Below are positions 1,448 to 6,318 of a stretch of DNA of 6,516 bases, one piece after another (the stretch's first letter is position 1; each line of letters opens with the position of its first letter). The DNA is taken from positions 1 to 6,516 of IMG/VR virus record IMGVR_UViG_3300029319_006019. One strand, 5' to 3'. Under the pieces are notes generated by a model. The model did no database searches. It was not told where the DNA came from and saw only the letters and a list, made by a program, of their open reading frames with translations. The translations under genes were made by a program, and so were the position numbers.

Positions 1448-1461
1448 CCAACAAAACAATC

Positions 1462-1490
1462 TTGCACTGGTTGGGCAGACCAGTTAAGAT
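1462..1490 (+). promoter_or_regulatory. Putative sigma70-type promoter P2 with an operator-like inverted repeat in the spacer
   Basis: TTGCAC (1462-1467), 17-nt spacer, TAAGAT (1485-1490), with an A-rich tract upstream (ACAAAACAAT). Inverted repeat ACTGGT (1466-1471) - 7 nt - ACCAGT (1479-1484). Confidence 0.7.
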
Positions 1491-1589
1491 TCCAAAACCA
1501 CCGGGGGTTCCTGTTACCCTTTAGGACCCAGCAGGGAGGCATGTGGGTGGTGAAATAGATGTCTCAACCAACCAAAGGAGAGCGATACC

Positions 1590-2087
1590 ATGGAAGATTT
1601 GAACTTTACTCCAGAAGAGATGCTGGCCATCATGAAGACCATTTCGACCAAAGAGGTCGAGGCAGCCAAGAGCGCCATTGCCAACGACTCACAAGCTGAG
1701 ATCGATATGACTGTGCGCATCAAGGGGCTGCTGAAGCGAGGCAATGCGTTCTCTTCAAAAGGAACGAGCCGCATCCCGTGGAAGGTAGCGATAGCTTTGC
1801 TGCTCAAGCGGTCAGGTGTGACTGGGCCAGGCTCCATCGAACTTCTCACTGAGGCCATTCGAGATGCTGCCTCAATGAACAAGGACGCGCGGGAAAAGCT
1901 GCTCAACGAGCACGGCGTTGGGGATGCTCTTCAGGTCGTGAACAAGGAGCTTTGCGAGAAGATTCCCAGGATCCAAAAGAACGGAAACATCACGTTCGTG
2001 CCTCAAGTGCGAGAAGTGGTCTGTGCGCCGGTCTTGGTTCCTGATGAAGATGAACACAACGCCTCAGAAACAGAGGCAGCCAAGTAA
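1590..2087 (+). CDS. Hypothetical protein, 165 aa, with an acidic C-terminal tail
   Basis: SD AAGGAG (1575-1580) before ATG 1590, protein-like composition, ends PDEDEHNASETEAAK. Family not recognised. Confidence 0.85.
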   Translation: MEDLNFTPEEMLAIMKTISTKEVEAAKSAIANDSQAEIDMTVRIKGLLKRGNAFSSKGTSRIPWKVAIALLLKRSGVTGPGSIELLTEAIRDAASMNKDAREKLLNEHGVGDALQVVNKELCEKIPRIQKNGNITFVPQVREVVCAPVLVPDEDEHNASETEAAK

Positions 2088-2097
2088 AGGGGAACCA

Positions 2098-2409
2098 ATG
2101 GCAAAGGGAAGACGACAACCGCCAGAGCTTCGTGTGGACACATACGATGCTCTCGCAAGCCTGGTGCGGGCCTTGGGAGGCAAGGTCCGGCCAGCCGCTA
2201 AGATTCTTGAGACCGGGTATTCGCATCTCTGGCAGCAAATGAACCACAAGCGACCACCGCCGACCGTAGACTCCCTGGCTCTGTATGCCAATCGAGTCTA
2301 CGCAAACACAGGGTTGAAGATGGTTCTTACAATCACGCCTGACATGCGGCTCTACTACTCAATCTCATGTGAAGACAACCAAACCGAGGGCGTTGTCCTT
2401 GGACCTTGA
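2098..2409 (+). CDS. XRE/Cro-like helix-turn-helix DNA-binding protein, 103 aa (start revised from 2023 to ATG 2098)
   Basis: AAGGGG SD-like element right after the upstream stop. VRPAAKILETGYSHLWQQMNHKRPPPTVDSLALYANRV follows the XRE pattern (helix-turn-recognition helix, N-x-K-R-x-P-(S/T), then a helix), followed by a beta-like GLKMVLTI. Confidence 0.72.
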   Translation: MAKGRRQPPELRVDTYDALASLVRALGGKVRPAAKILETGYSHLWQQMNHKRPPPTVDSLALYANRVYANTGLKMVLTITPDMRLYYSISCEDNQTEGVVLGP

Positions 2410-2436
2410 TTCAAGTTGGTAGATCAAGTATCTACC
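2406..2436 (+). promoter_or_regulatory. Putative promoter P3 overlapped by two palindromes
   Basis: TTGATT (2406-2411), 17-nt spacer, TATCTA (2429-2434). Palindromes CTTGA-T-TCAAG (2405-2415) and GGTAGAT-caagt-ATCTACC (2418-2436). The predicted start near 2440 coincides with the start of the structured leader. Confidence 0.45.
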
Positions 2437-2561
2437 TACAGCCCGCCAAGGCTGATCCCCTTGGCACTCCTTCGGGAGGACAGGGCTCCTGGTCAGGCCA
2501 CCCAGAGTGCCCCGCGCTTTGGGTGGCCGCATCAGGACCCCGTGGGCTTACGACCAGGAGC
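2437..2561 (+). ncRNA. Structured cis-regulatory leader RNA upstream of the primase (family not recognised)
   Basis: Stems GCCAAGG/CCTTGGC (2445-2451/2459-2465), CTCC-TTCG-GGAG with a cUUCGg tetraloop (2467-2478), a 15-bp stem with G-U pairs (2496-2510/2514-2528), a closing stem AGCCC/GGGCT (2440-2444/2544-2548), and a 10-bp anti-SD/SD pairing (2485-2494/2552-2561). Confidence 0.62.
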
Positions 2562-2565
2562 AGAG

Positions 2566-3606
2566 ATGTGGATACAACAAGCAAAGGAGCTTCCCGTCCT
2601 TCAGGCGGCGAAAGCTCTTGGGCTACAAAAACGCCGTGGACGTTCTCTGGGCCCATGCCCAGCATGCAACTCAGAGACTCGCGGAACCGATGACAACCGA
2701 GGCCCAATTGGAGTAAGCGGCTCCCAGTTGGCTTGGAAGTGTCATCGCTGCGGAATCAAGGGGGATGTCGTCGACCTGGCATCCTTTCGGCTGCATGAGT
2801 TGCCCTTTAGAGAGCTACCGTCTGGCAGACAGCTTGAAGTGCGCACATGGTTCGCAGAGCAAGGCGCATGCCCAAAGCCAGGCGAAACCCGAGTTCCACA
2901 AGGGCTTGAGCACAAGAAAACCCTTCTGCGGGTGGTCGAGGACGGATATCGCCGCCCGCCCCAGCAAGAACTACATGACCTCTGGCGAACTACTTGCTCG
3001 TTTGAAAAGTCGCTAAACGACGACCCAGAGTGGGCAGACCCCATGGCAACGTGGTTGCTGCGCAGAAAGTTTGCCCCGTTGATGCTGGACCAATGCAAGG
3101 CCGCTCGCGTGCTGCCTCCTCCAGGCCGAGTTCAAATGCCAGAGTGGTGGAGAAAGGAGTGGCTTCCCAACTACCGGATAGCTGTTCCCGTCTATGAACC
3201 AGACGGCACATTTGCCAGCATTCACGCAAGAAGCGTAGCTGTACCAGAGATCACACCTAAGACACGATGGCCATATCGATATGAAGCCAGCGAGTTGGTC
3301 ATGGCCAACCCAAACGCTGTCCGCATGATGCGAGGCCAGAAGGTCCCTGGGTTGACCGGCCTGTTAATCTGTGAGGGCCTTACTGATTTCATTCGAGCGT
3401 GCTGTTCAGCACACGCAGAAGAAATGACGATTGCCATCGTCGCTGCGGCCTCGGGTGGCTTTAGAGCAATCCCAAAAATCCAAATTCCCAAACCAATCAA
3501 AATCTACATTGCGACCGACCCTGACGACCGAGGAGACGAATACGCCACAGTGATTGCTGATGGCCTACCCGACCACAAGGTTTACCGAGTCCCGCTGGAG
3601 GCCTAA
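2566..3606 (+). CDS. DnaG-type DNA primase (C4 zinc ribbon + TOPRIM), 346 aa; start revised from TTG 2416 to ATG 2566
   Basis: SD AGGAG (2556-2560) 5 nt before ATG. Zinc motif CPAC-x24-CHRC followed by GIKGDVVDL, TOPRIM motifs LLICEGLTDF and IYIATDPDDRG, and an IHARS segment in the polymerase subdomain. The final D-x-D/N motif is absent before the stop. Confidence 0.9.
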   Translation: MWIQQAKELPVLQAAKALGLQKRRGRSLGPCPACNSETRGTDDNRGPIGVSGSQLAWKCHRCGIKGDVVDLASFRLHELPFRELPSGRQLEVRTWFAEQGACPKPGETRVPQGLEHKKTLLRVVEDGYRRPPQQELHDLWRTTCSFEKSLNDDPEWADPMATWLLRRKFAPLMLDQCKAARVLPPPGRVQMPEWWRKEWLPNYRIAVPVYEPDGTFASIHARSVAVPEITPKTRWPYRYEASELVMANPNAVRMMRGQKVPGLTGLLICEGLTDFIRACCSAHAEEMTIAIVAAASGGFRAIPKIQIPKPIKIYIATDPDDRGDEYATVIADGLPDHKVYRVPLEA

Positions 3607-3614
3607 AACAGAAA

Positions 3615-4946
3615 ATGCCTGACATCGACGGAACGCTGCGCGGAGAGAAGACCTCACTAACGAACTTGCTGAAGATTGCTGAAGCCAAAGGAGACCTGAA
3701 TGAAGATGAAGAAGAGCAACTGGACAGGCATCAACCAGACCCGATTGTGCTGCCTCAACTTGAGCAGTACCGAGACAAGCAGGGGAATCTCACCGGAGTG
3801 CCCAAGCAGTCGCGAAACAACCTGTACAAGATTTTAAGCCTGGACCGTCGATACAAGAACAGCATTTGGGAAAACCTGTTCGACGGCTCTTTGTACCTGA
3901 AAGACGACGAGTACAAGGACACGGACGACACGAAGATATCTTTGTGGATTGATGCGACATACGGCATCAAGTTTGCCGACAACACGGTGGCTGGCATTGC
4001 CAAGCTTATAGGCGAAGAAAACGGGATTAACCCGCTCCAAGAGTGGCTCAAGAGCTTGAAGTGGGATGGAGTCAAGCGCACAGACGATTGGCTTATCCGA
4101 GCGACTGGTTGTGAAGATACTGAGTTGAACCGGATGATGGGCAACAAGTGGCTCATTCAAGCAATAGCCCGCGCAATGAAGCCCGGCGCGAAGGCCGACT
4201 GTGTCTTGATCTTGATTGGACCGCAAGGCGCACGGAAGAGCAGTCTGCTCAGGACCTTGGCTACCGAGCAGTTTTTTTCGGATACGCCTCTCGATATTGG
4301 TTCAGCCAATGCCTACACGCAGATTCAAAGAGCCTGGATCTACGAGGTAGCGGAGCTTGACTCTGTCAGGCGCTCAGCCAACTCAGCAACCAAGGCCTTC
4401 ATCAGTGCCCAGGAAGACACCTACAGGCCAGCGTATGGCCGCAGGGCAGTCACAATCAAGAGACACACCGTCTTTGCCGGAACCACGAACGACAGCCAGT
4501 TTATGAATGACTGGACGGGAAGTCGGCGGTACTGGCCAATCAAGGTGAAGAAGGTTGATCTGGACTGGGTTGCAGAGTTTCGTGACCAGCTTTGGGCTGA
4601 AGCCATCCTTGAGTACAACTCAGGCGCCACATGGTGGCTTGAACAGGAATGGGAGAAGGAGCGCGAAGAAGAAAGCGAGATCTTCCGGCAGGAGGACCCT
4701 TGGAGGGATGTCATCGTTCAGTATGCGCAAAACTACTACGGTGTGATCTCAACGCGAACCATTATGGAGGATGCGCTCAAGCTTGAGAAAAACCACATGA
4801 CTCGACACGCCGAGATTCGTGTGGCCGAGATTCTGCGAGAACTTGGATTTAAGAAGGACCGCAAGCGTGTGGGTGACAGCCGAGTCTATGTTTGGACGAA
4901 AACTAAAGTGATTGAACTAGATAAAACAGGTGATATCGATGAATGA
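3615..4946 (+). CDS. VapE/VirE (virulence-associated protein E) family P-loop ATPase, probable replicative helicase, 443 aa
   Basis: Family-typical WDGVKR, ARAMKPGAKADCVLILIGPQGARKS (Walker A, nt 4218-4241), WIYEVAELD (Walker B), KAFISAQEDTYRPAYGR, FAGTTN, DWTGSRRYWPI, RDQLWAEA and EDPW, then a C-terminal winged-helix-like region. Confidence 0.92.
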   Translation: MPDIDGTLRGEKTSLTNLLKIAEAKGDLNEDEEEQLDRHQPDPIVLPQLEQYRDKQGNLTGVPKQSRNNLYKILSLDRRYKNSIWENLFDGSLYLKDDEYKDTDDTKISLWIDATYGIKFADNTVAGIAKLIGEENGINPLQEWLKSLKWDGVKRTDDWLIRATGCEDTELNRMMGNKWLIQAIARAMKPGAKADCVLILIGPQGARKSSLLRTLATEQFFSDTPLDIGSANAYTQIQRAWIYEVAELDSVRRSANSATKAFISAQEDTYRPAYGRRAVTIKRHTVFAGTTNDSQFMNDWTGSRRYWPIKVKKVDLDWVAEFRDQLWAEAILEYNSGATWWLEQEWEKEREEESEIFRQEDPWRDVIVQYAQNYYGVISTRTIMEDALKLEKNHMTRHAEIRVAEILRELGFKKDRKRVGDSRVYVWTKTKVIELDKTGDIDE

Positions 4947-6318
4947 TGTATGTGTGATTGCAGGAGCGTACTACTTTCCACCGGGAAATAAAGTCGCGGC
5001 CAAACTTTCAAAGTCCTACAGCCTTCCCAACCCTGACTACCGAATGGCTCAAGGCCTACGAAATCGTGGGAAGTGGGTGCAAATGCCGCCCGAACGAGTC
5101 AGCGCATGCCAGGAAATTCCATTCGAGCACCCCTGGGGTGGCGGCATGGCGATTCCTCGTAACGCAAATCTTGATGGGAGCGGCCTCAAGGTAATCGACA
5201 AGCGAACGTACCCAGTAGTCAAAGATCCGTTGACGCCCGTTGGTGGATACAACCTTCGCTCTTACCAGGAAGACGCGCTTGGCGAGTGGATTAAGGCCGG
5301 ACAAGAAGGAGTCATCATTGCTCCATGTGGCGCCGGAAAGACCACCATTGGCATTTTCGCCATCACAGCTTGTGAAACCAAGACGCTAATCCTGGTACAC
5401 ACCAACGACCTTGCTGAGCAGTGGACAAACCGAATCGACACCACTCTTGATGGCTGCACCACCAGCGTCTATGGAGGAGGCAAGAGAGACGACTCAGGCC
5501 GCGTTGTAGTTGCTACATTCCAGACGCTTGACCGAATGTCTTGGGTTGAGCGCTATGAGTGGGCAAAGCAGTTCGGGCTCTGCATTGTTGACGAGTGTCA
5601 CCACGTTCCGGCTGAGATGTTTAGCCGAGTGATGATGACGATTCCAGCAAAACACCGGCTCGGGCTAACGGCTACCCCGCGCAGACAAGATGGCCTTACA
5701 TCGATGCTCTGGTGGCATCTCGGACCAGCCGTCTACGAGATTACCAATGCAGACCTGGCCAAAGACGGGCATGTTTTGCCACCGAAAGTAGAGTGGTTGA
5801 TGACCGACTGGACGGGGCCTAAAGGACAAATGGACTGGCCAAAGCTCGTGAATGAGATGGCTGCAAACATGTACCGAAATGAACGCATCATTAGCCGAAT
5901 AGTTCGAGCGATTGAAGATGGTCGACAAGTCCTTGTTCTTTCTGATCGAGTCAACCATTGCTCGCTTATGGCTCAAGAGCTTCGACTTCGTGGATACACC
6001 GCCGAGCCGCTGGTTGGTCGTATGACAAAGAAGCAGCGCGCCGAAACTTTGGACGCTGCCAGGAATAGGCAAATACAGGTAGTCTGCGCCACGACGCTTG
6101 CAGATGAGGGCCTTGATCTTCCATCGCTTGATACGGTTGTTCTGACAACGCCGACCAAGGCTTTGGCGCGCATTCAGCAGCGAATCGGACGGGTAATGCG
6201 GCCACACCCAGACAAGAAGCCCCCTCTTGTCATTGATGTGGTTGATGACATCGGGTCAATGCGCGGACTCGCCAAGAAGCGAATGAAGCTGTACACTCGT
6301 ATTGGATGTACGTGGTAG
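4939..6318 (+). CDS. Superfamily 2 DExH-box helicase (UvsW/XPB/ResIII-like), about 459 aa
   Basis: Q motif LRSYQ, I APCGAGKT, Ia LVHTNDLAEQW, Ib VATFQTL, II DECHH, III LTATP, V LADEGLDLP, VI QRIGRVMR. ATG 4939 (SD-like AGGTGA 4928-4933, ATGAATGA overlap with the upstream stop) is preferred over GTG 4930. Confidence 0.93.
   Translation: MNDVCVIAGAYYFPPGNKVAAKLSKSYSLPNPDYRMAQGLRNRGKWVQMPPERVSACQEIPFEHPWGGGMAIPRNANLDGSGLKVIDKRTYPVVKDPLTPVGGYNLRSYQEDALGEWIKAGQEGVIIAPCGAGKTTIGIFAITACETKTLILVHTNDLAEQWTNRIDTTLDGCTTSVYGGGKRDDSGRVVVATFQTLDRMSWVERYEWAKQFGLCIVDECHHVPAEMFSRVMMTIPAKHRLGLTATPRRQDGLTSMLWWHLGPAVYEITNADLAKDGHVLPPKVEWLMTDWTGPKGQMDWPKLVNEMAANMYRNERIISRIVRAIEDGRQVLVLSDRVNHCSLMAQELRLRGYTAEPLVGRMTKKQRAETLDAARNRQIQVVCATTLADEGLDLPSLDTVVLTTPTKALARIQQRIGRVMRPHPDKKPPLVIDVVDDIGSMRGLAKKRMKLYTRIGCTW

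Follow-up and report, generated by a model that had tools for sequence, protein, structure and literature searches.

Structured leaders that control phage replication genes have been described for a few model phages, chiefly for genes 32 and 43 of T4. The operator of T4 gp43 combines a hairpin carrying conserved loop bases with the ribosome-binding site (RBS) (PMC3014915). In metagenomic data, Fremin, Bhatt and Kyrpides (2023) give 10,006 unnamed structured RNAs predicted in IMG/VR, with 879 candidates located at most 25 bp upstream of genes, including GP20 and GP32 leaders (PMC10690425). Here, we analyzed a leader in the viral contig IMGVR_UViG_3300029319_006019 (6516 bp; this whole stretch is referred to below as the window), where it fills the 156-nucleotide (nt) gap between the stop codon of an upstream gene (2407-2409) and the ATG at 2566 of a DNA primase gene. 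We consider it reasonably likely that this leader (2410-2565) is the untranslated leader of the primase mRNA and represents a new family of cis-acting translational control elements, which probably controls the translation level of the replication operon.

A conserved helix masking the Shine-Dalgarno sequence

All coordinates and pairings that an earlier, sequence-only reading had listed for the leader were recovered in the window (Table 1). The anti-Shine-Dalgarno (anti-SD) segment GCTCCTGGTC (2485-2494) is the perfect 10-bp complement of GACCAGGAGC (2552-2561), a strand that includes the SD AGGAG (2556-2560) located 5 nt before the ATG, and the resulting OFF helix (2485-2494 : 2552-2561) buries the SD. 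In the competing ON pairings, TCCTGGT (2487-2493) pairs with ATCAGGA (2531-2537) and GGG (2483-2485) with CCC (2538-2540), and the ON fold is closed in the window by a helix between AGCCC (2440-2444) and GGGCT (2544-2548). A repeat finder recovered the arm made of hairpin P3 plus the ON helix (I1, 2483-2510 / 2514-2541) as well as the OFF arm (I8, 2485-2494 / 2552-2561, 100% complementary), and added a further hairpin, P0 (I9, 2418-2436). The unconstrained minimum free energy (MFE) structure of 2410-2580 was exactly the ON four-way-junction fold described earlier (-83.2 kcal/mol), and the + strand of this segment gave a z score of -5.32, with 0 of 200 shuffles as good, compared with -2.65 for the minus strand. 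For 2435-2574, the forced OFF fold reached -74.4 kcal/mol and the best SD-free fold -73.1 kcal/mol, indicating that the two folds are near-isoenergetic in the window, as had been anticipated.

Scans of viral, metagenome and genome collections yielded 164 loci (L numbers below) and ~50 distinct relatives with the same noncoding leader directly 5' of an orthologous primase (38-95% identical). In an alignment made by MAFFT with no structural input (A2), the ten pairs between the anti-SD strand X and the SD strand were paired in 87.7% of cases, with double-sided changes in 5 of the 10 (for instance, UA 38 / CG 10; AU 33 / GC 7 / CG 4; CG 23 / UA 7), and sliding the partner by 1-3 columns lowered the pairing to 34-56%. 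The RNAalifold consensus on A2 consisted of hairpin P1 plus the X:SD helix. Moreover, in an alignment fitted to a model without the X:SD helix (A4), this helix was still 90.3% paired, and over alignments the values were 88-90%, with 4-5 pairs showing double-sided changes. X and the SD strand occur as matched variants (CUCCUGAC / GUCAGGAG, GCUCCUGGUC / GACCAGGAGC, GCUUCCGGUG / CACCGGGAGU, GCUCCCAC / GUGGGAGC, and GCUCCCCA / UGGGGAGC); in a cross-pairing matrix, the duplex of each X type with its own SD strand was more stable by 4-7 kcal/mol than those with foreign SD strands, and against shuffled partners X:SD pairing won in 24 of 24 representatives (fraction <=0.026). On these comparative grounds, the OFF helix is the best-supported helix of the leader. 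The alignments point to a conserved and covarying anti-SD:SD helix, by which SD-sequestering cis-regulatory leaders are recognized, and the model sites and the start codon fixed by homologues place it in the 5' untranslated region, on the sense strand and directly before the start codon. The anti-SD:SD pairing proposed from the window alone was upheld in this structure-blind analysis, and the homologous primase leaders, on whose covariation the proposal had been made to depend, do covary.

A covariance model (R1) built from P1, P3 and the ON helix placed a single site in each locus, on the + strand and invariably terminating at the primase start (49 distinct sequences, E <1e-4); in 870 kb of unrelated viral DNA, it gave only six hits, each on a contig from the same group of primase-bearing phages. 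Since the architecture recurs before orthologous primases in 49 distinct sequences and covaries, it represents more than chance. A loose DNA pattern (TGATC-gap-GGGCTCCTGA) was also run against IMG/VR and set aside, its matches being mostly due to chance, with 6 of 100 loci true and from the same phage group.

Distribution and subfamilies of the leader

All leader-bearing hits were uncultivated viral or metagenomic contigs, and most had been obtained in ocean surveys, TARA among them. Where the primase was 38-50% identical, nearly all relatives had a gap of 100-190 nt before its start, and nothing similar to the leader was found in relatives below 36% primase identity. Among GenBank phage records (n=50,697) there was neither a DNA match nor a primase-protein match, and the VapE helicase found only relatives of <40% identity among GenBank phages; one match in the genome collection, a Pirellulaceae metagenome-assembled genome (34%), is without the leader. 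The common plan comprises, from 5' to 3', P0 (optional), GCCC, P1 (loop YUGAUCM), P2 (a tetraloop hairpin, also optional), strand X as GGGCUCCUGAC or a variant of it, P3 (long and variable), the decoy (UCAGG-CCC or variants), the SD strand, and AUGUGGAU.

Four architectural subfamilies were distinguished. Subfamily A (the window, L002, L009, and L032-L039) has P2 and the closing helix, while subfamily B, to which the majority of leaders belong, has neither; subfamily C comprises L047-L057, and the divergent subfamily D comprises L044, L045/46 and L163. The divergent leaders (L045:1850-2034, L163:2310-2509, and L044:2366-2506) keep the UGAUC loop of P1, P2 and a long P3, and L045 and L163 pair their SD (GGGGAAA) within a small local hairpin (UUUUCUC) and not with a distant anti-SD. 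A natural deletion of the anti-SD strand, P3 and the decoy occurs in L079 (L079:2401-2500; Ga0208010_1000035, the same contig as L142), whose lineage retains P0, P1 (UGAUCA loop) and P2 and has GGGGG in the SD region.

P2 occurs in subfamilies A, C and D and is missing from B. Its UUCG loop, previously taken as a sign of selection, turned out not to be conserved, since the P2 loops of the family include UUCG, UUU, GUAA, GCAA, GUGA and GAUAA. P0, a hairpin ending 6-10 nt before GCCC, occurs in subfamilies A and B and is absent in C and D. Its GTAG...CTAC arms are conserved; in subfamily B (e.g., L018:2378-2401) they have a constant spacing of 16 nt and the upstream TAG stop codon falls within the 5' arm, and in subfamily A the loop measures 3-6 nt.

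The competing helix and P3

On the R1 alignment, pairing in P3 reached 95.5% and double changes affected 9 of its 11 model pairs; P3 of L002 carries an A-U to G-C change plus several G.U-preserving changes. Pairing in the proximal ON helix (CCUGA:UCAGG) was 91.1%, 3 of its 5 pairs showing double changes, and its distal part (GGG:CCC) was poorly aligned (61.6%). Compared with shuffled decoy strands, ON pairing was significant in subfamily B and in the X types T3/T4 (L033, L038, and L039; fraction <=0.016), where the decoy nearly duplicates the SD strand, and L002 keeps the ON helix through U-A to U.G changes. On these results, with some covariation, we take the ON helix to be real for the family, less secure than the OFF helix and least secure in the branch of the window itself. 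Of the ON fold put forward earlier, the competing SD-freeing helix stood as a conserved feature, whereas in the subfamily of the window its pairing was weak against shuffles (0.058 in the window, 0.14 in L002, 0.10 in L009, and 0.27 in L032).

OFF and ON helices cannot coexist, and both are conserved and of similar predicted stability. For 48 leaders, the ensemble difference G(SD-free) minus G(X:SD enforced) lay between -4.5 and +8 kcal/mol (median, near +1.4), suggesting that the two states are, in a soft sense, near-isoenergetic across the family. The SD-free folds of subfamilies A and C contain a closing helix between the 5' flank and the segment between decoy and SD, with the variants AGCCC:GGGCU, AACGC:GCGUU, AUCGC:GCGAU and UUGUC:GACAA. 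This closing helix of the four-way junction, also part of the earlier proposal, appears in the MFE fold and shows compensatory-looking changes; since the energies of cognate and foreign duplexes do not separate, it is kept as plausible only.

Alternatively, P3 and the ON helix, which together make ~24 bp interrupted by a 2x2 internal loop, could be a substrate of RNase III or another nuclease, with cleavage removing or freeing the anti-SD. In the window, it forms a long, nearly continuous duplex (2483-2541) located between cistrons of a probable polycistronic transcript, for which neither promoter nor terminator was found, and a precedent exists in T7, whose early mRNA is processed by RNase III and whose gene 1.2 is regulated by this enzyme. 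However, in subfamily B the duplex is shorter and interrupted, no cleavage site was identified, and P1 is not accounted for; moreover, processing is compatible with a switch rather than exclusive. We consider a processing site quite improbable.

The P1 hairpin as a candidate sensor

The most constrained feature of the leader, which the sequence-only reading had missed, is the loop of P1, in which UGAUC occupies invariant columns in all 48 aligned sequences. The P1 stem was 89.5% paired on the R1 alignment, with double changes in 5 of 6 pairs, and this value is an underestimate because subfamily A is misaligned by one column. In all members, the loop reads CUGA or UUGA followed by UC and conforms to the YUNR U-turn motif; such loops are the recognition loops of antisense-controlled RNAs (PMC4485353). 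Judged from the alignments, the leader resembles an operator of the T4 gene 43 type in having a hairpin with a sequence-conserved loop upstream of, and linked to, the RBS.

The UGAUC loop is also kept in subfamily D and in the L079 lineage. Considering that it persists where SD masking differs or is lost, P1 is the constant part of the leader and the SD-masking part the variable one, which corresponds to an arrangement of sensor and expression platform, and P1 looks like the sensor. Every A and B member has a GCCC segment adjoining the 5' arm of P1, and helix PJ can form between this segment and the GGGC with which X starts. This coupling of P1 to the anti-SD strand had likewise gone unnoticed; on A4, PJ was 82.7% paired. 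In L016, GCCA occurs with UGGC in PJ, and the decoy is changed to match too (GAUGGC with GCCAUC), so that a nucleotide of X covaries with two alternative partners, which is the signature expected of a switch, observed in one lineage.

The same layout, i.e., a conserved 5' module beside an SD-masking platform that varies among subfamilies while P1 stays, together with the near-isoenergetic folds, would also fit a small-molecule riboswitch, in which P1-PJ-(P2) or the four-way junction forms an aptamer for a metabolite (e.g., reporting nucleotide pools) and X, decoy and SD form the platform. Yet few unpaired bases beyond the hairpin loop are conserved; a riboswitch-type pocket was not apparent in the family, as the conserved unpaired bases are those of the P1 loop only and both P2 and the junction are optional. 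Subfamily B, in particular, has a bulged helix only in place of a multi-helix junction, and no Rfam riboswitch matched at E values up to 10. A metabolite-binding role is accordingly given a low probability.

Two proposed pairings of the P1 loop were discarded. The pseudoknot between loop CTGAT and ATCAG suggested for the OFF fold has 5 bp in the window, L002 and L038, and elsewhere it is reduced to at most 4 bp, often wobbles, or absent. Pairing of the loop with primase codons 2-3 (GGAU) amounts to 4-5 bp only and involves protein-constrained bases. A separate long-range complement of 15 nt (2217-2231 / 2561-2575; 13 Watson-Crick and 2 G.U pairs) joins the coding region of the upstream gene to the spacer, the AUG and primase codons 2-3; with two uncompensated mismatches in L002, it is probably due to chance.

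A two-state model and its possible effectors

In the model we prefer, X (2483-2494) would pair with the SD strand in the OFF state, burying AGGAG, and with the decoy (2531-2540) just 3' of P3 in the ON state, leaving the SD free. The balance of the two states would set translation initiation of the primase, and the helicases would follow through an 8-nt gap and overlapping frames. Transcription reaches the decoy earlier than the SD, for which reason the ON state is expected to form first. Hairpin P1 (U-turn loop YUGAUCM) would stack on PJ, and PJ would hold X at its 5' end; binding of a factor to P1/PJ would then deny the decoy the GGG of X, leave X to the SD and repress translation. The idea that a switch gates the primase-helicase operon, already put forward by the sequence-only reading, thus retains its two structural components, an SD-masking leader before the operon and a helix competing with it, while switching itself is inferred.

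Several observations weigh against this model. Besides the weak ON pairing in the branch of the window, ON pairing was weak against shuffles in most of subfamily C, and a U.U mismatch lies within the ON helix of L009 and L032. PJ hardly varies, with one compensatory case plus wobbles, and the closing helix could not be separated from chance in the comparison of cognate and foreign duplexes. A search for a conserved cis partner of the P1 loop found none, and no second P1-like hairpin, as a regulon would require, stood above the minus-strand background within 2.5 kb or near the operon. Some relatives are without the leader, namely L041/L151 (8-nt gap) and L042/48/54 (37 nt). In addition, predicted energies are good to a few kcal/mol only, which makes "isoenergetic" a soft term, and the direction of regulation and the effector are, like switching, inferred.

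A simpler alternative is a constitutive attenuator in which the SD is masked for a fixed, low level of primase and the decoy is a tuning device or folding intermediate, with no effector. It would agree with the OFF helix being the best supported, with the weakness of ON in several subfamilies, with the lack of a ligand-like set of conserved junction bases, and with the fact that primases are required in small amounts. On the other hand, it leaves unexplained the invariant UGAUC loop and its retention where masking differs or is lost, as well as a conserved decoy that matches X in register beside P3, and a plain weak SD would do the same more cheaply. Such an attenuator is possible, if unlikely.

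With regard to the effector of the two-state model, our preferred guess is autogenous control by a replication protein of the phage, in analogy to T4 gp43 and gp32. Pairing of the loop with the 3' tail of 16S rRNA and a trans RNA are alternative effectors; the evidence does not discriminate among them, nor between them and no effector. In the 16S variant, the ribosome itself would be the effector, the loop docking the 30S subunit beside the masked SD in a split, structured RBS that acts as a ribosome-actuated switch. The loop UGAUC(C) is the exact complement of GGAUCA in the textbook 16S rRNA 3' tail, beside the anti-SD CCUCC, and a perfect extended SD reads AAGGAGGUGAUCC; X (CUCCU) would in that case imitate the rRNA anti-SD. 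About 9 of 1024 pentamers lie in that 16S complement, making the match unlikely by chance, by a post hoc estimate that serves as a lead only. We regard ribosome docking as a minor possibility.

Coding status, strand and searches for other elements

Comparative data place the primase start at ATG 2566 rather than at TTG 2416. Most of the primase homologues in the protein database (n=54) are 346-369 amino acids (aa) long, with 100% query cover from residue 1, and they begin with M-W-I at the position of ATG 2566, W2 and I3 being nearly invariant; the aligned start in the fetched loci is ATG or GTG. An in-frame stop lies 33-54 nt 5' of the primase start in most relatives (111 nt in L002), and leader substitutions track base pairing rather than codons. 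In the window, the frame is open from 2416 to 2566, which would permit the leader region to be coding, as an N-terminal extension of the primase from TTG 2416, a start that had been named as undoing the RNA interpretation. Given the homologue lengths, the M-W-I start and the upstream stops, this extension is practically excluded; with TTG 2416 not a start, the leader is noncoding.

G.U cells outnumbered A.C cells by 73 to 13 in P1, P3 and ON and by 36 to 12 in OFF, indicating that the constraint acts on the + strand as RNA, in agreement with what the G-U pairs of the window had suggested. The excess also speaks against a DNA-level element, i.e., a replication origin, a primase loading signal or operators of a helix-turn-helix (HTH) protein, with GATC as a methylation site. 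Points in favor of such an element are the replication genes and the HTH gene beside the leader, the palindromic nature of P0, whose GTAG/CTAC arms are conserved, and the fact that GATC is a Dam-type site. Nevertheless, good pairing is confined to the + strand, the SD takes part in the key helix, which covaries with it, and the stems vary freely yet keep pairing, unlike protein operators. The repeat finder detected no direct-repeat families or iterons in the leader, and there was no AT-rich unwinding tract as in a replication origin (leader GC content, 0.53-0.60). A DNA-level role of the leader is very unlikely; P0 alone could be an RNA hairpin, its wobble pairs fitting the + strand, or an operator of the HTH protein.

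A cmscan of the whole window against Rfam 15 at E values up to 10 returned only two chance snoRNA-like matches (4382 and 5586), in keeping with the earlier remark that the leader belongs to no recognized family. No known RNA family, tRNA or tmRNA was found in the window. A T-box was considered, as the loop has AUC/GAU triplets; RF00230 gave no match at E values up to 10, and nothing else fits. Between 1900 and 2700, a scan for the sigma-70 consensus only found no promoter-like site on either strand, and there was no minus-strand terminator overlapping the leader, leaving no sign of a countertranscript; terminator-like sites on the + strand, with a hairpin followed by a U run as in an attenuator, were also absent.

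Features of the locus and gene context

Every gene of the contig lies on the + strand. The window contains four small genes without a Pfam match, followed by the primase, a VapE-like helicase and an SF2 helicase. The order HTH gene, leader, primase, VapE and SF2 helicase was constant in all examined loci, and the HTH gene lies 5' of the primase in every relative, including the leaderless ones. Its start (ATG 2044) was chosen by us within open reading frame (ORF) 2023-2409. A profile of 19 homologues matched PDB 3cec, a HigA-type HTH protein, weakly (E 0.0034), and a few members of the homologue set matched Pfam HTH_31/HTH_3. The sequence assignment to the Xre/Cro type is weak; the conserved core reads ...GG..R.AA.I.GTS.S.LW...PPPTLDTL....

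The primase stop and the VapE start are separated by 8 nt (3606-3615), and there is a 17-nt overlap between the genes for VapE and the SF2 helicase (4930-4946). These distances suggest that primase, VapE and SF2 helicase are translationally coupled, and control at the primase start would then reach both helicases. A second intergenic gap in the window (1448-1589; 142 nt, between ORFs 938-1447 and 1590-2087) had a folding z score of +0.31, which is not unusual, with one local hairpin at 1458-1491.

Table 1 Features of the window in and around the primase leader
Feature	Coordinates	Strand	Evidence or remark
Small Xre/Cro-like HTH protein (weak assignment)	2044..2409	+	Profile; conserved position before leader
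P0 hairpin, GGTAGAT / loop CAAGT / ATCTACC; accessory element	2418..2436	+	Fold; repeat finder
5' strand AGCCC	2440..2444	+	Pairs GGGC 2483-2486 (PJ, OFF) or GGGCT 2544-2548 (ON closing helix)
P1 hairpin, 7-bp stem, loop CTGATCC (2452-2458) with invariant UGAUC; proposed sensor	2445..2465	+	
P2 hairpin, CTCC-TTCG-GGAG; optional element	2467..2478	+	In subfamilies A, C, D
Strand X (GGGCTCCTGGTC), anti-SD, common to three mutually exclusive pairings	2483..2494	+	
P3 hairpin, 15 bp in the window, sequence variable in relatives	2496..2528	+	
Decoy / anti-anti-SD strand, ATCAGGA-CCC; pairs X, extends P3 (ON)	2531..2540	+	
Closing-helix 3' strand GGGCT-TA, ON four-way junction	2544..2550	+	Within MFE fold
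SD strand GACCAGGAGC, AGGAG 2556-2560; pairs X (OFF)	2552..2561	+	Alignment covariation; RNAalifold
Primase, zinc-finger plus Toprim type, 346 aa, start ATG 2566	2566..3606	+	phrog_47 DNA primase
VapE-like (primase-associated) helicase	3615..4946	+	PF05272 (E 1e-76); phrog_1313
SF2 (ResIII/DEAD) helicase	4930..6318	+	PF04851, PF00271; phrog_16

Comparison with known systems

The leader constitutes a well-populated family of ~50 distinct sequences in four architectural subfamilies from uncultivated marine viruses, in which sequence comparison was enough to resolve two exclusive helices of a single strand together with a sensor-like hairpin with an invariant loop. It is a tractable orphan element, being a short RNA with clear mutation-by-mutation predictions and few candidate effectors. 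We know of no autogenous RNA operator for a DnaG-type primase, and if the effector is the primase, this leader would be the first such operator known to us; if it is the 16S tail, the leader would represent a new way of building an RBS. Either effector would show how these phages limit or time the synthesis of primase and helicases.

Leaders that sequester the SD and carry an anti-anti-SD strand are well known as a kind; the present family is absent from Rfam 15. The candidates of Fremin et al. (2023) come from the same data source and are the same kind of object; their text does not mention primase, and the motif may be among the unnamed entries (PMC10690425).

Like the antisense-controlled systems ColIb-P9 repZ/Inc, R1 CopA/CopT and those of the hok/sok type, the leader places a replication gene under translational control by leader structure, and it shares with the ColIb-P9 and R1 systems a recognition hairpin with a YUNR U-turn loop (PMC4485353). 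It differs from them in that the consensus scan revealed no minus-strand countertranscript promoter or terminator, and a leader peptide and pseudoknot activator are not conserved. With translational riboswitches, it has in common a platform in which one strand has two exclusive partners, one of them the SD (anti-SD/anti-anti-SD exchange), and a conserved 5' sensor-like module beside a platform that varies between subfamilies. Unlike them, it is without a conserved binding pocket or Rfam riboswitch match, and its conserved element is a simple hairpin loop.

The operators of T4/RB69 gene 43 (DNA polymerase) and gene 32 (single-stranded DNA-binding protein) show no sequence similarity to the leader, whose binding protein is hypothetical. 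Moreover, in T4 the protein directly occludes the RBS, whereas here an RNA strand would mask the SD, with a decoy competing for it. Like the leader, these operators are located in the mRNA leaders of phage replication genes and combine a conserved-loop hairpin upstream of the RBS with RBS occlusion, and the shared logic would be that a replication protein is limited to need (PMC3014915).

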